63,419 nucleotides of DNA, filler included, from Choristocarpus tenellus KU-1152 (GCA_964200185.2; 8 parts of 8 records of this genome joined end to end with filler, not necessarily neighbours in it), one strand, 5' to 3'. Shown: positions 41,884 to 59,372, numbered from the whole stretch's first letter. Notes: generated by a model not told the origin, from the sequence alone. Made by a program: numbers and translations.

Positions 41884-42389
41884 NNNNNNNNNNNNNNNNN
41901 NNNNNNNNNNNNNNNNNNNNNNNNNNNTTAATTAATTAANNNNNNNNNNNNNNNNNNNNNNNNNNNNNNNNNNNNNNNNNNNNGAAACCAATGAAAACTA
42001 TATACATATGTGTATATAAAATGTCCTAAACATAAGAATACTATAAGACAATGCGTGGTGTCGTCCTTATCTTCCCATCCACCTATTCCTGTGCCTCTGG
42101 GGCGTTGATATATAATTATATGTAAGGCTTTTATAATTTTTAGATAGTGAAATACATTTTGCGCAACCTCGCAAGAACGATTTGATTTATTTGTTGGTTC
42201 TTCTAAACAAACCAGTCTCCCTAAATTGCTTACTTGGTGTTGTACTTGACTTCATAGTTTTGGTGAACGAAGACCAAATATTCAGATTCACATAGACTTT
42301 CCATGCAAGGTTTGAGTTGTCAACTCGCTCTCAGATTTTCCTTCCTGGTTTCAGTGCCGTCGCTACTCCTCTCTACTCTATGAAACGCA

Positions 42390-45300
42390 ATGGACTCTCC
42401 AGAACAGGACATGAGGACCGTGGACTGGAATGATCTCGATAAGAAGAAATTGTGAGTTCTAATGGACTTGGGCGTGGGTGGTGGGTACTTAACGCTATCT
42501 GATCCTCGTGCAACATCTGTATCGGTGCCTTTGCTCACCTAACCCCTGATACAACTCAACTTTTATCCCTCCCATGTACAACTACAACAGTTACTCGTAT
42601 GGGATCACATTTTTTATGGGGGTGAGGTTGCTACTGCACCCTCCATTCTTGATCAAGACCAAGGTACAGGTAGATAGGACGAATAGTAGCTCTTCATCAT
42701 TTCAAGTCGTTCGAGAGACTGTCCGCAGCGAAGGCATCAGGGGGCTGTACAAGGTACCACCTTATCATTGGAGTGATCGAAATAGCAGTTCTATGACTCT
42801 CAAATCAGTGTGATCCATAGTTTGTTGCCTTACTCTTAGGTACACCGAGGGGAATTGAACCTAGCACTTCTTATTTCGCTCCCCCCCTCTATGGACATCG
42901 GGCCTGCCAAGTATGGTCCATGCCGACTTGCATCGGACATACGTTGGTTATCTGTCTTACGCCTACTTTACCATTTGCCGTGTGCCTGGGCGAAAGGGGT
43001 TCTGGATCAGCTCAGGAACTCTAATATTTCGCCAGGTATACTTCACCACATACGAGATCATCAGGCATCGCCTTGGGCCGGGGAGCGCGACGTACGAGCG
43101 TCTCGGGGAAAAAAGGGGGGAGGTTGTCCGGAACATGACGGCGGGAGCAGGGAGCTCATCCTTGATGCAAATATTCTCTGTGCCATTGGATATCATTTCA
43201 CAGGTTTGATAGAACCTCAGGACAGTGGGGTGGGGCATTGTGGGGCGAGGTGGGCGATGACACACGTTCGTGAACGATACTATTAATGGCGTACCATCTG
43301 TGTGTGTTCGCACATGACTGCTCATCGTCCGAAAATATGTACACTGGAAACTCTTTATTCCCCACATGTATGTAGGCATACAAATGCAACCATTCCCATG
43401 CCCTCTCCTTTTCTTCCTTATGTCCTCCCAACTAATCTTCCTCCTCTGATCAGCGTATGATGGTTCATCAAAAGGGAGCAACAGGAGGTCCAAGGGGAGA
43501 AGTGTCGTTGATGGCAGGAAATAACGTTTCCATTAGGCAAACGGTTTGGGAAGTGTACAAAGAGAGTGGTTTGGCTGGATTTTACCGGGGCTTTCACATC
43601 TCTGTCCTCCAGTTTGCACCGACTTCTGCGGTGAGAGGCATGTGATTTCTCCCTTGGCAGGGAGGGAGTCTGGGTGTTACTTTTTTTTGGAGTACAAGTA
43701 GTGCTAGTATTTTAAATCTAACGATGGTGGAGTGTATTGCTGAAAGTGCCAGTTTCGTATTTTTATGTTTCCATCAAAACAGATTCGCAAGGTGGTAGGA
43801 ACTAGCACAATGATATCCTCTACTTCTCGAGGGAAAAAAATTGTCAGAAAGCAGTGATGCTGTGTGTGACCATTCTTTGTTGCATTATTTGAAAGAAAAA
43901 TATTTTATTTATGGTGGTTGACCTGACCGGCAGAAGGGTTGTGGCAGGCTGAAAAGAATCCTGTGGACAGAAACTGGTAACTGTTATCTATTTAATTTTC
44001 TTCTCTGTCCTGGACTCGAACATCACTTTATGTGCCCTTCAACATAGACACTAGTTGCCACCGAACTGTGGCTAACTTTGGGAAGGTAACACTTTCCTCC
44101 GCTTTTGATCTCCCTCATGCTGGTCCTTCTGTCTGACGTGCTGTGAGTTACTTCATGGTAATGCTGTTGGTGTTTACTGTGTAAGAATTGGAGAGAATAG
44201 CAACCTTTTCCCCACTTGGTCATGTACACCCTCAGTTCCAATGCCCTCCAAAGATATTCCCACCCCCTGCCCACCACCACTTCCCCTACCCCCTGCACCT
44301 CTTCCGCTCCTTCTGTGGGATGTGTGATATTTGCTTTCTGACCCCTGAATCTAACAACCCTGTTGAAGAGAGAGAAGTGGTGAATTTGTCGGTGTAAAAT
44401 TACTTTTTTTCTTGTTTTTTTGCTCTGTCTTCCTGCCCCAGCACTTACCTCCTGCTGTTGAGCATAATCTACTATGATTGGTCATTGCCTTTGTCCCATT
44501 TTTCTACCCTTTCCCTGCCACCTCACTGCTTGCCTTTCCCACTGCATACTACTGCATCTGCCATTCATGTCTACAACCCCCCCCCCACCCCTTCCCTCGT
44601 GACAAGATTTGGTGGACAGCCTATGGACTTTATAGTGAAGCCATCGAAGATGTTGTGAAACACTTGCCTGGTACAGATCAGCTGTCAGTAGACCAGCGTC
44701 GAGTGGGCACACAGGCTGCAGCGGGGTTGTGCACGGGTACCACAACTGTGTTGCTAACAAACCCCTTGGATGTGTTGCGAACCAGACTTCAGGTGGAAGG
44801 GAGGCGAGGAGACAATCGCACCATCAGGTGCGCTGGAATGCGCTGGAATGGGAACTCGAGTAGAACAATCTTGGCGTATGTGTTTGGGGGGAGAATTAGG
44901 GGTAGGAGGTGATGGAAGGCTATGGTCATGTGCTTTCTAGTTTGTTTTTTTGTTGTGTTTTAAACCTGTATTGGTAGGGGGGATAAAGGCAGTGCTCACC
45001 ATGCTGGTTTGCAGTTTAGTTGATTGTTGCCATTCCTGCATGTTGGATGTTCATGGACAGACCAGTGTAATCCCGTGTCTTGAACAGTGTAATGTTTCGT
45101 TTTGGAGGCGCACTTGGCGTACGTTCCAGGGTTGGGAAGTAGTAGGACTGTAGTTCTGGAGCTGTATTATGATGTAGTCGTGCCATTTATAGAGCATTGC
45201 AATAGAGTTATTGGTTGTAGAGTATCAATCTCTCCTGATGATTTGCTTGACTGTTGTTTTGTATAGCCCCTCCCTCTATATTCAGCGTCACTACAGTTGA

Positions 45301-46221
45301 CTGACTGTGTTGTGGGAGGTTGACCTTTTCAACAAGGGTTAGTGACAAGGAGGTTGATGGGAAATACAGGAATATACCTGTTTTCTGTACAGAACCCACT
45401 GTAGGATCACTAAAACGAAAATTATGGACAACTCTTGGGGCAATCAGTAACGTACTTGAAACCTGGAACAGTTGCCACTTGGGAGTTGCCAAGACTATTT
45501 TTCTGTGTATTTTTCATGCACCGGTGGGGAACCCTCACCCTGAACAACTGCACATGTGATAGGTGCTATGCACATTCTACTCTGGTGTTGACATAAGCTA
45601 CTCTATTTTATTATATTAACCCTTTCCTGGTAACTGGTTGTGTACCCGATAACGTAAACTTATTGGTTGAAGTTCTGCATCTCTGCATTTTGCTGTGTGA
45701 ACGTGTTTGATGGAGGTCATTATCCATCATCGCCAATATTTGAGTGGTGCCTTCAAGGTCGGATTATTTCTGTCTTTCTGGAGGCGGAAGATATTTTGAA
45801 GGACAGGTTAACTATATCATCTGTCCTTTACAGGCATACAATATTGTGGTGTTGTGATAGAGAGGAGCCTATGCCCGTGCCTCTTGTTGGTTTCCTTCAC
45901 ACTGCAGAGGAACAGCAGGCCACACAATTGCCCCCTGAGATCCCTCTTACCTACCACCCCCTTACAATCAACCCCAGATCGGAATTCAGGACCCTGATGA
46001 AGGAGGATGGTCGTATGGGACTATTGCGAGGCATAGGCCCCCAACTTCTGGCCATGGCGCCTGCCTCTGTCCTCATTGTGACGATATATGAGCTCATCAA
46101 GCGACTCAGCAGGAAGAACCCATCAGAGATGGAGAGAATCCAAGGGGATCCACCTGGTCGGGAAGTGGAATTGGAGACAAGTGTGCACAGTGGAAGTGGA
46201 GTGGCAGGGGTGGTGAGATGA
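42390..46221 (+). CDS. Mitochondrial carrier (SLC25A44-like); exons 42390-42451, 42591-42753, 42997-43203, 43454-43630, 44607-44827, 45978-46221
   Basis: VDWNDLDKKKFY N-terminus typical of SLC25A44; three carrier repeats (PPFLIKTKVQ, PLDIISQRMM, PLDVLRTRLQ; G..GLYKG/GFYRG/GLLRG); all junctions GT-AG and in phase. Confidence 0.9.
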
Positions 46222-47023
46222 TCGGGGGATGGCCTTGGTGCTGAGTAGGGTAACCAGCAAAGCAGACAAGGGTGGGCAGTATAATTTTGTTTAGAGGGTG
46301 GCTAATTTAATTAGCAAGAACGTGCCGCTTTCATGAGGTGGTTACAGGAGGAGGGCAGGAATGGACTCGAGAAAATGTACAGATAAATTTTCTATTAGCT
46401 CAGACTTTCTGTAATCCCTGGAGAATTTAGGAGCATGTCTTGATTGCCTTAAGTTACCCCGAGGCAGGCTTGTGTAGATCTTCAGTGCAGTGTCTCTGTG
46501 GAGTTTTGGTGAGGGGTGGAGGAGAATAGGACACAATTTTGGCTATGCCACCATATACACATCGAATCATACACAGTTTCTCCTTTCTGAGGTCTTACAC
46601 GTGCATAGAGTGGAGTTCTCTCTCTCTATATATGTTTATCCTGGTTTGTGAACCCCAAAGACAGTACTTTGACGATAATTTTGCATTATGTACAGATTGT
46701 GGTTCTGACTGTAAGAATGTAGTTTAGTTCATAGACCTTTTTGCACCATAACCCACCCTTACATGCATCTCAACGGTCCGAAAGGGAAGATGGCTCAAGA
46801 AATGTGTTCAATTTATCCTCTAGAGCTTGGAGTTGGCACATTTCATCCTTACCCTTTTGCTTTTTTGTTGAAGTGTTTAGATTTTTTTTGTTTTCTTTGT
46901 GAATTCTGGAGGGACATAAGGTTTACAAAGATGTTGGACTGTGTGTGTGTTGGGGCAAAGCAGGCAATTGATTAAGCACCCTATGAGAGTCAATTTTGTC
47001 ACATTATATGCCTTGAAGTATAA

Positions 47024-47203
47024 TTAGATAATAGTTCTGTATTGGATTCGATAGCAATGGAACATATTCTGCTACAGAATAGAAAAATTTCACCTCTTTT
47101 AGAAGAGGATGGAAAAATCCAGTTTGAATCAAGAATATCCAGTGAGGAGTTAGGGTATGTATCAGATCATCGCATTTTTAATAAAAAAATATGTCCTGCC
47201 AGG
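47024..47203 (+). pseudogene. Bacterial type I PKS dehydratase domain N-terminal fragment
   Basis: EHILLQNRKISPLL...IQFESRISSEELGYVSDHRIFNKKICPA matches the HPLL start and the catalytic Hxxx(G/N)xxxxP motif. Confidence 0.7.
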
Positions 47204-47305
47204 CACCTTCTTACTATTCAACTCTATACAAATAACATCTTTTGCATTTTTTTCATTAAGACACTCTAATATAAAATCTTTTAGGATTGTTTCACTAATA
47301 TCCAC
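47201..47305 (-). pseudogene. rsfS: Ribosome silencing factor RsfS (Iojap) N-terminal fragment, Rickettsiales-like
   Basis: VDISETILKDFILECLNEKNAKDVICIELNSKKVP; GTG start overlaps the nadD stop. Confidence 0.75.
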
Positions 47306-47490
47306 ATTTATTGCTCATAGAGATGTTTCTAATTTGTGTAGAAGAATTACTACATAGTTTTCCTCTAACGACCATTACAGTATTTGTCTGAGTTTTATCA
47401 ACAGATGCTTTTAGTTTTAAACAAAAAATGCTGGATCCACTAGCCTTGAAGGAACAAGACGATAAAAATTATTATATCACACAATTCTTC
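47295..47490 (-). pseudogene. nadD: Nicotinate-nucleotide adenylyltransferase C-terminal fragment (2 frameshifts)
   Basis: ELCDIIIF(D)R....RGKLCSNSSTQIR carries the SST.IR motif; directly upstream of rsfS as in the conserved nadD-rsfS operon. Confidence 0.7.
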
Positions 47491-47544
47491 AGCGAACTTA
47501 CCTTCGAAACAACCAGCTGGTCTATTAAAAAAAACTTCAGACAT
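47488..47544 (-). pseudogene. Alphaproteobacterial alpha/beta hydrolase N-terminus
   Basis: MSEVFFNRPAGCFEGKF resembles the conserved M.EV.FNGPAGR.EGRY start. Confidence 0.6.
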
Positions 47545-47591
47545 TTTATTAGAAATTTATTTCATAATAAAATTTAGTCAAGCATTTTAGT

Positions 47592-47625
47592 ATTTTACTA
47601 AATAAAACTAAATATTTAGTAAAAT
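47592..47625. terminator. Perfect 13-bp hairpin between lpxL and hydrolase fragments
   Basis: attttactaaata-aaactaaa-tatttagtaaaat, about 30 nt downstream of the lpxL stop; terminator role is inference. Confidence 0.5.
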
Positions 47626-47653
47626 CGAAAGTGATACGTGAATTTGGAAAAAT

Positions 47654-47715
47654 CTATTTCCATCTATTATGAAACCAAAACCATTGAGTAGGATTTTGGC
47701 GTATCCAAATTTCTT
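47654..47715 (-). pseudogene. lpxL: Lipid A acyltransferase LpxL/HtrB C-terminal fragment
   Basis: WIRQNPTQWFWFHNRWK* is the P.QW.W.H.RWK terminal motif, in the Rickettsia-like form. Confidence 0.85.
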
Positions 47716-47964
47716 GGACCATTGATCAAATTTCTTACATAAAAATTAAGCATATTAGTAAGAAATAATAATAAATATTTCTTCTAAGTCTTGATCAAGT
47801 TTTTAAGAAGTATTAGCATGCACACTAAATTTGCACTATTATCGTTGGACTTAAGTTCAGTATAAATCTATAAACTCACACAGTAGTCAAGCATTTGCTA
47901 TAGCAAGTCTACGACTAAACAATTGCTTTTAAAGTTTTTTTTTTGTCCATTAGATAATCTACAA

Positions 47965-48290
47965 ATGTCAAAAATAGAATCAAGTCCTTTTAGAAATAAA
48001 ATTAGGAATGTTTTTTGGGCAATCCATAGGTCTGAACTTAGAAAGTTTATCTCTGTCTGGGTTAATGTTTTGTGTACTGCTCAATCAAAATATACTTCGT
48101 ATCTTAAAGGATAGAATTCTAATTGCAGAGGTAAGCGCATAAATTACTAGTTTTACAAAGGTATATTGTGTTACCCCTATAGTAGCAGCACTGTAGTCAT
48201 TTACGCAACGCTTGTAAATCATTCACCCTTTTGTAAGATATTTTATTACTTCATATTAATATTCACTGGATTTTATATACTTTTTTGCTT
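47965..48290 (+). pseudogene. tlc5: TLC/NTT nucleotide translocase N-terminal fragment, Rickettsia Tlc5-like (frameshifts and internal stop)
   Basis: MSKIESSPFRNKIRNVFWAIHRSELRKFI / GLMFCVLLNQNILRILKDRILIAEVSA*ITSFTKVYCVTP / VIYATLVNHSPFCKIFYYF...FYILF. Confidence 0.85.
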
Positions 48291-49576
48291 TCAGAAGTAC
48301 AAGGGATACACAATTGAGTACACATTATGTTACTTTTGACCATTACACAGGTTAATTTTGTTGACATTGTTTTAAGTCTCGCCTATGGCAGTATGGAAAA
48401 ATGGATATAGAAGTTTGAGTTTGACCTTTCTTTTTGTTTTTGTGGATACCTCCATGTAGTTGGGTGAGCTCACCATCTGTTTTTTCTCGACTCTGGTAGT
48501 ATTTTTCTTTGTTCTGGTTTCGTGTCATGTCCAATAAAGATGAAATATGCCTCTGAACCTTTTTAAGGTCAATAGTTGAAATGTCATGATTATAATGTAA
48601 CATTTCTTTTCCTTGTGCCATGAGTTGTAGAAGTAATGTAAAAATACTGCTCACTTTGCTGATGTACTTAAAACATTGTAAATCTTATTTTAGTTAGAGT
48701 AAGTATCTTGCTTACACATCGACTTTCTTACCATATACTGAACACATTCAATCATCACCTTTATAAAGTCTGTATTATTGTTGACTCTTACAGATAAGGT
48801 TCATTATCATGTTGGTTATGAAGGACTATGATATTAAGTGTATCCTTTCAATCCAAGGAAAACAAAAGAAAATGGCAGCACACAACACTAACTCCTCCCT
48901 AACATTGCTTGGTGATAAGGCCTTTGCCACTTTGTATTTATCTGACACTTTATGGTATAGTAGTAACAGATAGGATTACACTAGTCCATATCCCCAAACT
49001 CCTTACACAAAATTGGAAACATCTTGTCACTGTCATTGTAATATTTCCACTGGAAAATGATAGAAATTACTTCCATACGTTTGAGGAGATATTTTAGAAA
49101 TATAAATTAGATAAATTGGCTGAACAACAACAAATTCTGAACCAAAGGAGTAAATTGGAGGACACCCTCTAAGCATAAATACCATTGCAAAATCGACCTA
49201 TGTAGTGGTTCATTCTGTAGGATCCTACCCATTGAACTGGAAACAGGCATGAACAACAGAACTTCCTGGACAAAGATGTAAAGCACAAGATCACATTTCT
49301 CACATTCCACAAGAAGTAATAGGATACTTAAATTTAACAGGTGATAAAATGTAAGAAACGAGATGCAAACAATCTGAAACAGATGTCTGCAGTTGAAACA
49401 TGGTATTTTTTTTTCTTTTTTAGCCTCTCTGAAATGGGTGCACATTACACCTAGCGCAGTGCTACTGGTATCGACTGAACTCATTGAAGAAAACACCCAG
49501 TTGAAGTAGCAGACATTAGTCCTCCGAGGTAGTGCAGCTAATGGAGCGTGGCAGGGGTAAGACTACCTGAAAAAGC

Positions 49577-51712
<2,136 letters not shown>

Positions 51713-52117
51713 GGTGACGACTTTCCTCCCCACTCCGTGCTGCACCCTTCGACGAGAGAGGCTGTGGCAAGAAGGGTGTCCTCCACACGTCCAAAAATGT
51801 TTATAATTTTTCCCCACAACTTTTCGATAATAATCGCGCGCGTCCCACTTTTCGCGTGGATCATCTTTTGTAGGAGAACTACCACTGTGTATTTCATTGA
51901 GCTCCAAAATTCGTTTTTGAGACGCTGTCAAGTTGGTGGTGTGGTCGTTTCCCAAGCCTATACCCTGACCCTTGTCGTTTTGCAGATTTCTCTTCATGAG
52001 TCTGGCCGGTGGGTCCTTGAAGAAGCTCAAAAACAAGTTTCTTAACCCGAGGGGTTCGTTTCCGGGGTACGACTGAATTGACACACCCTTCCTACTCCCA
52101 ACCTTTGCGCGAGGAAC

Positions 52118-53569
52118 ATGGAGGAAGGAGATGGTGCCGGCATTTCTCAAATTATCTGGTGGATATGCGTAATCTTGGCCAGCTTGTGTACCTTTTGGTT
52201 CTTACTGTTTGACTTCGGCATGTACGCTCAGGAAGTCAAATCGTTTAGACGGGTCCACCTACTGAAGATGCTGGTTTTCTCATCCACCTGGATGCTGGGC
52301 AGCTTGATGTTCTCGATCACGACCATTCCATTGTACATCATCGGCCACAGAGACCAAGCAGCTGAGGTGGCGCACTACCTGGGGAACGTGATGGGGCAGT
52401 GGATGTTCCGTATCATTGCCCCACCTCCTGACGTTGTAGGACTGGAGAACCTACCTCCAGATGGGGAAAAAGGAATGGTTTATGTGTCTAACCACCAGTC
52501 AATGTTGGACATCGCTATGTTCTATTACATAGGTAGCCAGCGAAAATTCTCTTGGGTTAGCAAGAGCTCGGTCTTCCTTGTCCCTGGTGTAGGCTGCTTA
52601 ATGAAGTTAGCCAAATATGTCGCCCTGACCCGGGGCAACCGAAACAGTGTGCGTAAAATGTTCGATGACTGCACAGAGCGTATTGATGCAGGCTGGTCGG
52701 TGATGATATTCCCGCAGGGAACGAGACGTCGGCACAAGATCCTCGACTTCAAAGATGGCGCCTTCACCCTTGCTTTGGAGACGGGTGCTACAGTGGTGAG
52801 AGTTCAGATGGCGAGCGAACACAGCCCCACCGGAATAGGCCCCCACTCTTTCAAGAGAAATAATGATATTAATCTCCAGTCCGCGGGTGTTGTGATGCTT
52901 ACTGTATTGTATTGTCAGGTGACATCTTTCTGGGGCGGTTGATTGGGGACATTAAACACGTTCATCTCGTTCGTTCCTTCGAAAATAGATTTGTAACTTA
53001 GCAGAATGCAAAGGCGAAGGCGAGGAGCAATGAAATATTTAAATACTGTACTGAAGGGAAATTTCGTAGAGGCGTCTTGGACTGTGTTTGGCCTTGCACT
53101 TTAGTATCTTGTGACGCCCATTCCTTAGGGTGTGTTTTGAGAGTAGTGTTTAGCTGTACGTTTTGGCAGGGTGATGACACACGGGAGTACCATAAAAAGC
53201 TGCCTAGCACTCGCGTTCTTACTCCTCCCCTGCCAAATGTCCTCTTCCTCCAATTGTATATGCAAGGTACCATTTACACTGTACCTCCCTGAGGATATAT
53301 TTTTCTCATCCACAGAACGGGCCAAGGTAACAATTCATAAGCCTATCAGCCCTGGTGACCCAAAGTTCAAGGACCTAGTCACCCTCCGCAAGCACTGCTT
53401 TGACACAGTCATAGGGGCACTCCCATACAGCAAGGCTATGTTAGAGGAGCAGCAGGCAGCAAGAGCGGAAGCGGAGGAGGCAGAGGAAACCAAGTGTGAG
53501 AATGCGTCAGAGGCAGAAGTAACAGCACTGATTGGAGATGATGATGGTGGTTCCAAAAAGACAAACTGA
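52118..53569 (+). CDS. 1-acyl-sn-glycerol-3-phosphate acyltransferase (LPAAT/PlsC); exons 52118-52795, 53267-53569
   Basis: N-terminal TM segments, NHQSMLD and FPQGTR motifs, phase-0 GT-AG intron. Confidence 0.92.
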
Positions 53570-55766
53570 CTGTGAGGGTACATTTTCGCAATGATCTGCC
53601 TAAAGGTGATCTTTTGCTGGGAAAAATAGCCAATCTACTGTTACATGTAATTCTCCAGTTTTGGTTAGGTGAGGGTGAACACAGGTGATACAGTCTGGTT
53701 GGGGTTTCTGTGCTGTCCTAGGTTTTCGTGGCATATCCTGCAACTGGGGAGAAATATTCTGGGAGACTGAGGGGATGAATGCTGATGTTGAGAATGACTT
53801 TGACAAAGGAATGACACTCAATGAGCCTTTTTGGACAGTGGCATTGGTATGATGGGAAAAGAGATTTCCTGATTTCTACATGCAACGGCCAACCTATTTT
53901 GCTTTCATGGTAATTGTTGACAATATTGTAATGCAGGAGCTTGTCTCTCTTTAAATGTTCGGCAAAATGTTTGAGTGAAGTATGAGAGTTGGCCTGGGAC
54001 TTTCTTGAGTTCCCCCTCTCTCGCTACATGTTCCTCATTTGTTATCCTTTGACTGTGGGAGAGAGTATTGGCTGCTGTTGACCAGAGCAACTGTGTAATA
54101 TTTGGTTGTAGGATGTTGCAGGATGAGTGAGGAAAAAATAAGCTCGATGTGATGAATATACTTAGACGCAGGACATTGTTCTTGTTCTAGAGACCACACA
54201 CTACCGGACTGTCTGCAGCTATTTCAACAGCTGCTTTGTCACATGTAAGGAGTGCAGTTTGGGTCGAGTTCCATGGGTAACTGAGTACTGCTTGTGACTG
54301 GCTTGTGTCATCATGTGTGTTGATGACCAACTGTTCTGCATGAGGGCTTTTGTACAAATTTGGTTGGCTGTTGTATCCTTGTCTGTGTGCGAAGTACTTT
54401 GTGCGAAGTACTTTACGACCTACCAGTGACCGTCACTGAGTGGCAAAGATGCTACTGGGGTTTGTGGAGTTGTCATGCCCGACAAGATGTTGGTTCCTTA
54501 CATCTGTGTGGTGATTGGGCAGTGTGTTCCATATTTTCATCCTTCCCACAAATGTGTGGTAATCCACACCATGGCAGACACCTCTAGTTTAGAGGAGGTA
54601 TTGTAGCGGGTTTTTTGGGGGACTTTCATGGTACGAGAGAATGTTTTCCAGGTTACTTGAACATTTTTTTTGTTTGTCTTATCTTTGTAATCTGTCAACT
54701 GACGGAGCAAGTCCTCAATCCTGCTTTTGTAGGTACTGTGGCGCAGGTGGGGTGAATGAGGTCTGGGCGTTGGTTGGATTGCTATGCCAGTTGTGGAACC
54801 GGACTGATGTGGATATCATGTATTTCAAGAGTTGTCATCACATGGCTTCACGTGATACCACTGCAGAGTTGCAGATCAATACTGGGTAGATAAATCTCCT
54901 GGTCTCATTATTTACGTAAGTAGTAGATGGTTATCTTAGACTTTATCTAAAAAACACATATCATCAAAAAATGTCCCTCTAACCATCGATAGGAGCAGGA
55001 ACAGTGAAGGAAATCCTCTCCTAGACATGCAGTAAGAGTCATCGATACCTTTAGTTTCACTGACACACACCAATGGAGTGAAGCAGGAGTAGAAATCCCC
55101 CCATCCGCATCTCTCAAAATTTGAATCTTGCATGTAAATGAATGCATCTTTTTCTTTGCCATGTTCTGAAGATTCAATGTCTTTGTAATGCCTTCCATGT
55201 GGGTCTGCAGATGATGAGAATGCACAATCATTAAGAGTATGATATTGGCCTTTCCTCGATAGAGGGGTATGTGAGACAGATATTTCCCCATGAAGTGTAT
55301 TTCATAGTGGTTATATCTTCATCTATGACATCAGAGATTAGCAATATGTGACCTTGCTGGGGGGTCTGTCTCACCATGTGTACATATCGTACACTTCATT
55401 CCGTTTCTCATGGCATCCACCAACCCTCTGATGCCCGCACTCCTTGGTTGCAATGCTCCTCTCCTCTGTACTTCATATGGCCACTTCTTATGTGGATTTG
55501 TAGTCAAGTTGTGGAGTACTTCCTTGTTGGAAGAGTATTTGAAATTTTCCACACTTGCCCTGGAGCATCTAAAACAGTGTATGTCAGAAGGTGCTTGTTT
55601 TGACCCTGTTGAGTAGATTATTGAAGATCATGATGTTTGATACTCCTTTCCTAGAAGACACTGTGCACATGGTTTGTCTCTTGGGGCTAGGAGACTGTAA
55701 GCAATGCTCAGGGGTTTGCAACCCTTCTTTTTTCGCAAGGAGGCTTTCTTGTTGTCTCTTGAGTCA

Positions 55767-56039
55767 GATTCAAAGTATCTTAGAGGCTAGAGTCATGTCC
55801 ATTTGGGGGCCAAAACCAAATGTTGTGATTTTGATGTAATTTTGGCTACGTGTTGTTAGGAAGAATCAATATCCTTGTTCCAGGCACACCTTTTCATGAC
55901 ATACGCATTTTATCTACTCCGCATTTTATCTACTCCAAAACGTTTCAGAGTAGGTAAAATGTCATAAAAAGCCTGTGGAAAGCCAAGCCCAAAGCGGACA
56001 AACAGGGCAAAACTTGTACCCTCTAAGATACTTTCAATC
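55767..56039 (+). mobile_element. MITE family A1 with internal 17-bp duplication
   Basis: TIR gattcaaagtatc...gatactttcaatc; TSD TCA; gcattttatctactcc repeated. Confidence 0.9.
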
Positions 56040-56249
56040 TCAAGCTTGTGTGCAATATGAAGTGGAGATTCACACAGAAAGGAGCAAGTTGGTTTGCATG
56101 TTAGCAGATGACTTGCATATGCACAGCATCGAACACCTGCTACCGAGCAACTTATCTATTCAATGGGCAAGTTGGTTTGGGGTCCCTTTAAACTAATTCC
56201 AGTTATACCACCTGAAAAAAAAATGACCAGAACTAACACATATGCTCAC

Positions 56250-58650
56250 TGTAAGCGCTCAGCTCCACAACATAGATTGGGTTTATTGCTTGTTGTTAAC
56301 ATGAAGCTCCACAATAGGTTATTAGTGACCCCAGTTGCTCTTGTCTCTACTATCCTGAGGAACTGTACAACAGTCTGCCGTAGGCTCTATGCCTGGAGGA
56401 CTCCATCATTGATAACTGTCCCATTTTCCCCACCTACACTCTTCACTCCCCCACCATTATCTTGAAACAACCTACTGCTTTCCTCATTCACATGCAACAC
56501 CGTAAATATATGCCTTTGAAACATCATCCCCCTCTCTTTCTGTTCTCTGAATCTTATACGGGATTTTTCCCCTTCTCCATCAACATTAACCCTTAACAAT
56601 CTGTTCTTCTTTTCCCTTATCCTTTCCTGAGCATCCTAGTTGCTTCTCCATTTTCGCCAACTTCTTTCCACCCTACTGGCAGCATGAGAAGTATCTGGAG
56701 GGGAAACTGTGGAAATAGTTTCCTTGTCCTTCTGCAAACAATTCTGACACCCTCTCCTTGTAAAAGAAGCATGCCAATGTCCACCCCTGTCACACAATAT
56801 AGCCATTTATTTCTTATTTTCGCAGTAACTCCTTACCCTTCTTCTCTACTGTACCGCTTTCATTATCGAATGCCTCCTGGCCCTTACCTCTCCCTTCCAT
56901 ACGAGCATATTTCATTGAACATCTCCTTTTAAAGCTTGCACACAATATTGCCCCCCAGGCGACTCTCACCCCATTGTCATCTTGTGACTTCAATGCCTGC
57001 CAATTTTCAGTTCATGGACAACTCCACATTATTCACTTTGTCTCAGAAGGAAAAGGTCAAGAGGATCGAAAGTTTCCTTATAGTTGTGTCAACCCCATCT
57101 TCTACCAACAAAACAAAACCTTTCTTTCCCGAACTTCACCATGTCCCAGTCTCACTTGAAAGTCTCATCATGCTGCAGAACCCCTGCTCTGACCAGGACT
57201 CCCGAAAGATGACATAGACCACATCCATAAATATTCTGCTTCTCCCTTCCTACTTTTACGTTATGCCATGAAACCATACCACAAGCTTAGGTTGGAAGGT
57301 GTTAGTGCCAAACCAATTGAGAGGTAGGCAGGTTTGAAGCTTTTCATATTCTAAGGCATCTTTCTTACCTCGTGCAATACACTCTATTTCAATGCTGTAA
57401 GTGCACAATAGTGTAGGGAAAATATATATTCCCCTTTACACACAAAAAGTTGCACCACAATTTAGTAAAGGCGCTTCCTGGAGTTGTACAAAATTGCGTC
57501 TTTTTGCCCTTTCTCGAGATCCTTGAAATGCAACCCTGCTTACCTTTCTCGAGATCAAGTGCCCTCCTTTATGTCTCCCACCATTTACCTGATCTTCTTC
57601 CAGATTGAATCTGCTCCTGAGTCCACTCCTGTGGTCACCATCCACCATATCTGCACTTTTATACTCCTTTCTCCTACGACTGGCCCCCTATTCCCTAATT
57701 CCATTGATAATGGCAGGCGTTCAATTTTGCTTGAAACCAATTCAGGCACGGGAATGAAGTGTGAGGTAGAATGTTTTTTAGGCCCTCAACACTCAAAAGG
57801 GTCTAAACGAACCCCCTCAAATATAGGATCGCTCATTCATTCTCATTTCCTGCCTGCTCTGTGGCAGGTATTCCCTCTGGAAGGTGCTTCGGATCGAAAG
57901 CTTTTCAGAGGGTAGGGCTGTGTCCGTTCGGGGTCATAAATCCAATATTGCGATTTTGATGTAATATTACTACTGTGTTTGTTAGCAAGTGTCAATATCC
58001 TTGCTCTGGATACACCTTTCATAGTCGTGTACATTCTACCTACTCCAAAATGTTTCAGAGTGGGAAACCTTATTCACAGAAAACTGAAAAAAGGGCACAA
58101 AAACCCCGTGGGAAGCCAAGCCCTGAATGGACAAACAGTGCAAAACTCCTACCCTCTGAAATTCTTAGGATCTCCTGCTCAATGGTATTCCCCCTCACCT
58201 CATTTCCTGAACTGATCTCCTCCCCCATTGACAACCCTACAATGTTTTCCCTTTCGTTCATTGCTCCTTGGCAATCTCAGTTTTGACTCTTTACTGCCTT
58301 TCTCAACTACTCTGCAATAGTCAACCATTATCACACACGGTCCCTCCATACCTCACTTGACTATCCTGTACCTCTTGCTTCCTATAATCTTTCACCTCTT
58401 CACTTTCTCCTGACCTAGATTCAGCACAATAGCATAGTTTACTGTTCTCCAGATTTCCTCTCAAAAATCAGTTTGTTACGTAGTCTTCCCCTCTCAAGCT
58501 CTTCGATCATTTGTTTGTATGAATTCTTGCTCCATTATTTTATCCTTGAACAAATACACGACCCTAACCGATCTAATTCCTCTTGTTCATGTGTCCAATT
58601 AATTTTCCTGCGTCATCTCCTTTCAAGGGAGTGGCACATGGTGCTGTACC
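56250..58650 (-). mobile_element. Highly decayed LINE-like relic interrupted by family C and MITE A
   Basis: Strong purine skew on the minus strand and broken K/E/R-rich frames; no intact diagnostic motif. Confidence 0.3.
57892..58172 (+). mobile_element. MITE family A2 (diverged)
   Basis: Degenerate TIRs gatcgaaag...cttaggatc; internal match to the 30035 copy. Confidence 0.85.
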
Positions 58651-59073
58651 TGTGACGGCTCCTCTCCTCAAATGTCAAGTGGGGGGTGGGGTAAAAGATG
58701 GACATTCCTTCATCCTCTTCTGTAAAAACCGATGGTATGCTTCCTCCGTTTGGAATTAATGTAACATAACCGTGCGGCTCCCATGAAGAAGCAAGACATT
58801 TTTTCACATGTTCATATTATATGGGTGTATTGTGCAGACACTAAAAAGGTTGCCCACCAAACTTTAAACAAAATGGGGCAGCCTACACCTATCTATCGAT
58901 TCTGCCACCGAAGCCATCCAAAACTCCATTCCAGGAAGCTATTTCACCACATCCACCGGGGCATTCAGGGGAAGCTTGCCTGCCTTCTCAGCCTTTTCGT
59001 TGCTAAGATGGAGAATTCTGAAGACATTATCACCATTGGACTCCAGCACTTCACCGTAGACTGCAAAGAGGCT

Positions 59074-59335
59074 CTACCAGACGCACTCTAGTGTCTCCTG
59101 GGGGTACACATCGAATGCCTCAATTGTGGCCTCCACCCACTCCTCTGTGTTGGTCCTCCCCATGTTATCCCTCCATTGCTGGATTAAAAGAAATAATCTC
59201 ATATTGTTGATGTTGAGGTCAGGTGAGTTGGTTGACTTGGTCTCTATGACAATCTTGTCCCCACTGCCTCTTCGATTGCCTCCATGATCCACCCCTTGGT
59301 GTGTGGCTTTGCCCCATCGTACTACACGAGGATGT
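59074..59335 (-). mobile_element. Tc1/mariner (DD39D-like) transposase relic
   Basis: V*YDGAKPH ... STNSPDLNINNMRLFLLIQ matches QQD.A.PH and PNSPDLN..DLG.F..IQ. Confidence 0.7.
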
Positions 59336-59372
59336 GAGCCAAAGGATCTTAGAGAGTAGAGCCGCGTCCATT
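59336..59372 (+). mobile_element. MITE family A left end inserted in the mariner relic, cut by gap
   Basis: gagccaaaggatcttagagagtagagccgcgtccatt. Confidence 0.8.

Follow-up and report, generated by a model that had tools for sequence, protein, structure and literature searches.

A patch of AT-rich DNA between two spliced genes of the brown alga Choristocarpus tenellus is very probably endosymbiont DNA of the Megaira group that was inserted into the nuclear genome and has decayed there. Its capture would have taken place at a break in the chromosome, behind a mitochondrial carrier gene and in the manner of a complex NUMT. The window, i.e. the whole stretch of DNA that was analysed (63,419 nucleotides, filler included), contains the patch within a 17.4-kb piece, contig CAXNAD020000679.1 of GCA_964200185.2. 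Choristocarpus is now placed in the early-branching Discosporangiales. In the NCBI taxonomy it stands under Sphacelariales. The exon at 52118-52798 is 100% identical to a C. tenellus protein. A preliminary description of this DNA had proposed a gap-free, AT-rich block of ~1.3 kb, made of shuffled Rickettsiaceae-type gene pieces, in a probable algal host. The host is indeed an alga, and the block is as described: the GC content is 29% in 47013-48293 vs 45% in the surrounding host genes and introns, and no N occurs across 41984-59372. Its left edge, previously put at 47024, had to be moved to ~47013.

The block has no gene call and sits between the convergent carrier and ubiquitin-RPS27A genes; the third gene call on the contig is an acyltransferase. 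The insert contains seven gene scraps, arranged in four blocks (A to D), and two bacterial non-coding spacers. The features are given below, where L and P numbers denote sequences used for comparison and X numbers denote sequencing runs.

42390-46221, plus strand: mitochondrial carrier gene (host, spliced; last exon 45978-46221), from the gene call and PF00153
46222-47210, plus strand: putative 3' UTR of the carrier mRNA, with the last ~200 nt bacterial (block A), from X3 contig 45975-47210
46991-47014, plus strand: left copy of a degenerate ~24-nt direct repeat, candidate target-site duplication, 19/25 identical to 48311-48335
47013-47203, plus strand: block A, bacterial type I PKS fragment, start of the dehydratase domain, with a stop at 47021-47023 (Pfam PF21089; P0052, P0053)
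47204-47305, minus strand: block B, 5' third of rsfS (ribosome silencing factor), with the motif LKDFIL.CL..K.A....C.E common with RsfS of JAQXDF01 and NVVL01
47295-47490, minus strand: block B, 3' end of nadD with two frameshifts, directly upstream of rsfS (L044, L048)
47491-47544, minus strand: block C, start (18 codons) of an Atu1826-type alpha/beta hydrolase, 12/18 identical to L051 from 6946 onward; weak match to PDB 2i3d
47545-47653, minus strand: block C, bacterial intergenic spacer between lpxL and hydrolase, aligning with the L051 and L050 spacers
47654-47712, minus strand: block C, 3' end of lpxL (~19 codons plus the stop; lipid A lauroyl acyltransferase; PF03279, PRK06628)
47713-47753, minus strand: block D, probable start of a PhbC-like alpha/beta hydrolase, divergent from tlc5, with one 1-nt gap (N-termini in L005, L016 and L015)
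47754-47964, plus strand: block D, divergent promoter/leader region of tlc5 as in relatives, with an AAG-T10-GTC element at 47932-47947
47965-48293, plus strand: block D, first ~110 codons of tlc5 (nucleotide translocase), Pfam TLC in three frames
Lesions in tlc5: -2 near 48053; stop at 48140-48142; -1 near 48191; +1 near 48283
48294-48310, no strand assigned: 17-nt filler between the tlc5 end and the right repeat, no match found on sequence inspection
48311-48335, plus strand: right copy of the candidate flanking repeat, where host DNA resumes; an X2 contig crosses this junction
49577-51517, minus strand: ubiquitin-RPS27A gene (host, spliced), convergent with the carrier gene, from the gene call and X3 spliced joints 49609/50092 and 50323/50699

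Host proteins were searched exon by exon, with no joined spliced model; broken frames were translated with X at each break, and stop-to-stop pieces were searched separately against Pfam and NCBIfam. Three scraps (nadD, rsfS and hydrolase) are too short to give a match in these two databases and were identified instead by comparison with fetched Rickettsiaceae loci. Against 200 shuffles, the alignment scores of the four blocks reached z = 16.8, 20.9, 13.7 and 34.6. PDB searches were uninformative apart from the weak Atu1826 match, a plasmid blastn search gave no match, an Rfam scan of the piece found no family and no rRNA, and a promoter search found no excess. Elsewhere in the 17.4-kb piece, there was no further match to the ORFs of the fetched bacterial loci. 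The six gene pieces named in the preliminary description could all be verified by Pfam, protein and DNA alignments. They are not, however, six separate scraps: the arrangement is one of four blocks, with a probable seventh scrap and two spacers. The word "shuffled" is apt for the three internal joints only, since three of the four blocks retain native donor gene pairs, as found in Megaira-group Rickettsiaceae.

Block B is collinear at the DNA level with the nadD-rsfS locus of L044 (66% over 268 columns, E 4e-12). The rsfS scrap has 16/25 residues identical to Rickettsiaceae RsfS, and the nadD C-terminus 18/36. A first metagenome scan using the rsfS piece gave no match; the route to rsfS was a DNA-pattern scan (one useful locus of 12), which led to a Rickettsiaceae RsfS and from there to 74 homologues. 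Two of these, from the MAGs JAQXDF01 and NVVL01, have the distinctive residues found in the window, and in both nadD lies directly before rsfS. The same order, a Megaira-group trait, is seen in L044, L048 and L049, as in NVVL01, and the Rickettsia-like rsfS locus L035 has no nadD match at that place.

In block C, the lpxL tail is 17/19 identical to L050 (Pfam E 5e-6). The gene order is that of L051, where an alpha/beta hydrolase comes after lpxL; the start of this hydrolase matches 47544-47491, and the spacer before it aligns as well. In two other loci, lpxL has different neighbours. We also considered 47544-47500 as part of NadD, which begins at ~47490; this segment is the hydrolase start instead. 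The hydrolase start happens to be joined in frame to the nadD remnant (47544-47464, minus strand), for which the chance is one in three, and no expression was seen over this part (X3 depth 3.6).

Block D has a DNA identity of 70% to L008 and 69% to L005 over tlc5. Upstream of it, 47713-47753 is the probable start of a PhbC-like hydrolase placed head-to-head with tlc5, an assignment in which we have moderate confidence from the alignments: the comparison with the N-termini in L005, L016 and L015 gives a shuffle p of 0.0004-0.0016 (post hoc), and the ATG-to-ATG spacer is 211 nt vs about 176-227 in relatives. A reading of 47713-47895 as further lpxL coding sequence scored lower, with z 1.0-1.8 vs 1.9-2.9 for PhbC start plus spacer against four Megaira-like loci, neither DNA score being strong alone. 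The AAG-T10-GTC element stands upstream of tlc5 in 20 of 25 Rickettsiaceae loci, and its extended form matches L005, L015 and L016. In most Rickettsiaceae, the run of about ten T between AAG and GTC is placed 14-23 nt ahead of the start of tlc5. A homopolymer kept so strictly may well be regulatory, for example through nucleotide-sensing reiterative transcription that controls the nucleotide transporter.

A scan of GTDB genomes with the tlc5 piece returned 26 loci, all from Rickettsiales/Rickettsiaceae. Trees were built from the first ~100 codons, as protein, as codon positions 1+2 and as DNA; L025 and L026 were omitted for their long branches from the set that also served for the AU tests. 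In all three, the insert groups with L005, L008, L015 and L016 (CAJQOD01, JANQTT01, JAYUJO01 and RXKF01, the last being L016), with support of 98/94, 99/95 and 93/96, respectively. In the protein tree, this group lies inside an eight-row clade with Ca. Megaera (97/92). AU tests rejected placement with Rickettsia (p 0.003) and with Tisiphia (p 0.004); grouping with the Ca. Megaera sp. clade was rejected less strongly (p 0.03). RXKF01 and NVVL01 are treated in PMC10132079 as new clades of Megaira. Ca. Penulousia, to which the GTDB placeholder genus GCA-2402195 (Megaera_A) corresponds, is a plausible candidate label for the genus of the donor. The alignments and trees thus support a Megaira-group Rickettsiaceae bacterium as the donor, with tlc5, nadD-rsfS and the other parts of blocks B-D in agreement. 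The Rickettsiaceae origin claimed earlier is upheld by the rsfS, nadD, lpxL and tlc5 matches together with the tlc5 trees, and is refined to the Megaira group rather than Rickettsia or Tisiphia; it applies to blocks B-D, no link to Rickettsiaceae having been found for the PKS piece. The closest known relative is only ~70% identical, which means that the donor itself is absent from the genomes searched and that the breakpoints carry an uncertainty of several bases. Two MAGs labelled "Rickettsia typhi" (L013, L024) fall outside Rickettsia in the tlc5 trees, one near Ca. Megaera and one in a distant clade; their labels look wrong.

Three runs of one study (X1, X2 and X3) hold the region, as contigs rather than raw reads; they possibly represent one strain, and X1 may be the source of the assembly. 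X2 looks like a DNA run because its depth is low and even over exon, intron and intergenic sequence, and X3 would be an RNA run because it has the spliced RPS27A and carrier joints at high depth. The right junction is crossed by an X2 contig (48178-48773), the left junction by an X3 contig running from the last carrier exon (45975-47210), and part of the interior is covered by another X2 contig (47215-47718), all with 0 differences. The insert is not spanned from end to end by any one contig, and X2 and X3 have no listed long piece over 47719-48177. The X2 depth, a coarse measure when taken from contigs, is 6.7 within the insert and 4-9 in the flanks. The position between two spliced host genes is therefore borne out by gene calls and junction-crossing contigs, and the joining to host DNA is seen outside the assembly, within the same study. 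In the three runs, no contig of at least 80% identity covers mid-tlc5, so that no intact symbiont copy was seen, contigs being a record of presence and not of absence. Short run matches of very high depth at 47226-47284 and 47589-47626 were discounted as due to chance in AT-rich sequence; one loose end reads like plastid ilvB. As to an empty site, the Discosporangium contig ends before it, Pylaiella has no insert match in the 4.4 kb behind RPS27A, though the region does not align, and the gene order in Tribonema differs.

The insert has lost coding constraint. There are three frameshifts and one stop in tlc5 and two frameshifts in nadD, every piece is cut short or interrupted, and no intact constrained frame, such as a functional transferred gene would have, was found. 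Near-invariant Tlc5 residues are changed at 7 of 45 sites, vs 0-3 in living members of the clade, and 5 of 84 conserved first and second codon positions differ, or about 6% (with a wide interval). The earlier argument that breaks in nadD and tlc speak against a living bacterium is confirmed, and the truncated rsfS and lpxL agree with it. A second PKS copy, found in X1 and X2 as a 621-nt contig matching 47030-47144, shows 12 differences and one gap in 114 nt, about 11%, which fits two copies each ~6% from a common source. This copy extends 487 nt further upstream and diverges at 47144, with an X2 depth of 6.6, like that of the host. A 2078-nt contig in X1 holds a diverged copy of 47520-47651, the lpxL-hydrolase spacer region. 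These extra diverged copies with different ends are probably further nuclear insertions from the same donor.

The most probable sequence of events is as follows. An ancestor of the Choristocarpus strain would have been infected by a Megaira-group Rickettsiaceae bacterium, whose DNA, freed in the cell, would have been captured at a double-strand break in the chromosome behind the carrier gene. The four stretches, from separate parts of the bacterial chromosome, would have come to lie end to end either by joining at capture or through later deletions. They have since decayed without coding constraint and without any bacterial protein being made. The only sign of use is a passive one: the 3' UTR of the carrier mRNA appears to extend over ~200 nt of the PKS scrap, as far as about 47210. 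Ligation of symbiont fragments into a double-strand break is the most likely route, by analogy with complex NUMTs and NUPTs. The neighbourhoods of the blocks differ in close relatives, which points to fragments from non-adjacent source loci. Judged against donor proxies of only ~70% identity, neighbouring blocks may overlap by 2-6 nt at the A/B joint and by as much as ~10 nt at the C/D joint; overlaps this short would fit end-joining. The flanking direct repeat of ~24 nt may tentatively be a target-site duplication, as 0.7% of random host window pairs score equally high, the windows having been picked post hoc.

A variant of this explanation, less likely but a live alternative, is that a single collinear insertion of tens to hundreds of kb was reduced to the four blocks by three internal deletions. 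Blocks B and C do read in the same direction, L014, from a distant Rickettsiaceae, has lpxL and tlc5 at a distance of 7 kb and likewise divergent, and the copies of blocks A and C with other ends suggest that much more donor DNA was once present. In closer relatives, however, no two blocks occur together within the ~10 kb flanks fetched, and three large deletions would be needed, each leaving only 190-580 nt. Multi-fragment organelle insertions, by comparison, are common (PMC6215612).

Block A may have come from the same donor as blocks B-D. It carries PKS_DH_N (Pfam E 3e-5) and is 60-64% identical to P0053/P0052, and among 1.8 billion representatives it has just two relatives, a 519-nt ENA contig and a 30-kb PKS cluster in assembly JAWVHC01. 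None of the matches found has a Rickettsiaceae label, and there is also a weak Nostoc plasmid match, so that the PKS scrap could come from a bacterium other than the Megaira-group donor of blocks B-D. We regard such a mixture of donors as improbable, since the PKS scrap is equally low in GC, its two copies are apart by an amount consistent with the decay of tlc5, and NRPS/PKS clusters are present in Megaira genomes (PMC10132079); the AT-rich JAWVHC01 cluster also adjoins a transposase 36% identical to those of a Rickettsia locus, which is weak support. The cluster itself (L029/L054; JAWVHC010002489.1, GCA_040384225.1) is an AT-rich bacterial type I PKS cluster of 30 kb in an assembly of many contigs. 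It encodes an acyl-CoA dehydrogenase, an AMP-binding protein, an ACP, three PKS, two thioesterases, an AprA-like methyltransferase and a PPTase, along with a transposase, an integrase and an intron maturase, and it possibly belongs to an unrecognised symbiont.

The reading of the insert as a molecular fossil of a past intracellular symbiont is supported by its origin, nuclear position and decay, with the donor's lifestyle being inferred from its relatives. It is conceivable, though very unlikely, that the DNA is nuclear and that the donor never lived inside the alga, having been a symbiont of an epiphyte or parasite, or that a vector, for example a virus, brought the DNA in. The three runs showed no sequence of a live symbiont, and Megaira-group bacteria in brown algae are known only through co-occurring sequence data. 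But Rickettsiaceae are predominantly intracellular, there are several independent-looking copies, no viral or transposon hallmark stands beside the insert, and the two Discosporangiales genomes have been reported without viral regions. That the block is an assembly chimera or contamination from a living bacterium is barely credible: brown algal cultures hold many bacteria and the block is an AT-rich one on a short contig (17 kb), but both outer junctions are crossed without mismatch by contigs of other runs, one of them RNA-like and continuous with a host exon, and the broken tlc5 and nadD and truncated rsfS and lpxL are unlike a living genome.

The carrier mRNA appears to end within the insert, near 47210, with the RNA nature, strand and end all read from contigs. 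The X3 depth is 209 over 45975-47210, 9.8 in the preceding intron and 0-3.6 past 47210, and the loose end at 45975 matches the upstream carrier exon that ends at 44827. An AATAAA at 47180-47185 in the PKS scrap lies 25 nt before 47210, and the end adjoins the A/B joint. This hexamer is absent behind RPS27A and LPAAT, which makes it uncertain as a signal, and a literature search on AATAAA as a poly(A) signal in the host found nothing relevant. Host DNA has another AATAAA at 48533, which could be where the carrier mRNA formerly ended. On the other side of the locus, an X3 contig at 48722-49421 has a depth of 44 and reaches 700 nt past the main RPS27A 3' contig, which suggests a minor long 3' UTR isoform of that gene.

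Among known systems, the nuwts of insects and nematodes are DNA of Rickettsiales (Wolbachia) in host chromosomes, mostly pseudogenised, that marks past infection. Wolbachia's family, the Anaplasmataceae, lacks lipid A genes. The Choristocarpus insert is likewise Rickettsiales DNA left in a host chromosome as a relic of infection, but nuwts concern animal hosts and Anaplasmataceae, whereas lpxL is present here. The ebo operon of eustigmatophytes is reportedly intact and located in the plastid genome. Yurchenko et al. (2018; PMC6092422) present it, with Ca. Phycorickettsia, as a transfer of DNA from Rickettsiaceae to ochrophytes; that case involves another bacterial genus, whereas ours consists of non-functional scraps in the nucleus.

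The idea of transfer from a symbiont to an algal nucleus is already published for Volvox carteri, where a rickettsial insertion with a donor from the Megaira ("hydra") group was read in 2015 as endosymbiotic gene transfer (PMC4324946). Both cases have truncated genes that were brought together from separate donor loci (in V. carteri, 16S beside murB-ddlB-ftsQ), derive from the same broad bacterial group and come from hosts in which no symbiont was detected, for Choristocarpus in the contigs of the three runs. They differ in that V. carteri is a green alga and its donor belongs to a different subclade; its EVE copies are without frameshifts or stops, whereas the present insert is clearly decayed; and it has four gene-like pieces in ~9 kb with host repeats, whereas here four blocks lie in 1.3 kb and the insert is apparently transcribed as a host 3' UTR. 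Complex NUMTs and NUPTs, including mosaic "numins" (Portugez et al. 2018; PMC6215612), are alike in mechanism, being short, distant fragments of cytoplasmic genomes joined end to end in the nucleus and decaying there; the signatures at their junctions fade as they age. The insert behaves like a complex NUMT without being one: its source is a bacterial symbiont, neither mitochondrial nor plastid, as tlc5, lpxL, nadD, rsfS and PKS are not organelle genes.

Few professional endosymbionts are documented in ochrophytes, and those of brown algae rest on co-sequenced bacteria (bioRxiv 10.64898/2026.03.27.714854; PMC10132079). Examples are MegNdeciBESST from Nemacystus decipiens and Ca. Penulousia in Ectocarpus sp. 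12. These share with our case the broad bacterial group and the host class, but they are separate bacterial sequences placed in the host by co-sequencing, whereas the Choristocarpus insert is joined to an algal chromosome. The Phaeoexplorer preprint does not mention Rickettsia, and in the literature searched, which left out most subscription papers, no nuclear Rickettsiales insertion is reported from a brown alga. Epiphytes in the culture flask cannot account for an insertion joined to host genes, which therefore strongly indicates that the heritable cell line of a brown alga was reached by a Megaira-group bacterium or, at the least, by its DNA. Other insertions may have been lost from view where filters remove sequence that looks bacterial, and a scan of the ~60 Phaeoexplorer genomes for such fossils would be a means of mapping and dating infections. 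Bacterial DNA that serves as the apparent 3' end of a host transcript is also a small example of transcript change without a protein.

As a tentative extension, this patch may be one of many, with a sizeable share of an unsequenced Megaira-group (Penulousia-like) genome, its PKS cluster included, scattered as decayed insertions through the C. tenellus genome, and with the bacterial DNA at this locus recruited as the 3' end of a housekeeping mRNA in place of an original end downstream. If true, the scattered insertions would prove, from the chromosomes themselves, that a brown algal lineage of early branching had a heritable symbiosis with an intracellular bacterium.

The host part of the contig has two further features. 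The head-to-head pair of RPS27A and acyltransferase genes (51690-52120) also occurs in Discosporangium, in Pylaiella and in the xanthophyte Tribonema, the last of which has a mitochondrial carrier gene on the opposite side of the pair. Beyond it, a repeat of ~280 nt with terminal inverted repeats of ~24 nt is found at 55766-56040 and 57889-58172, with a third copy starting at 59340 at the contig end; the two full copies are 70-85% alike, and the repeat looks like a MITE family.
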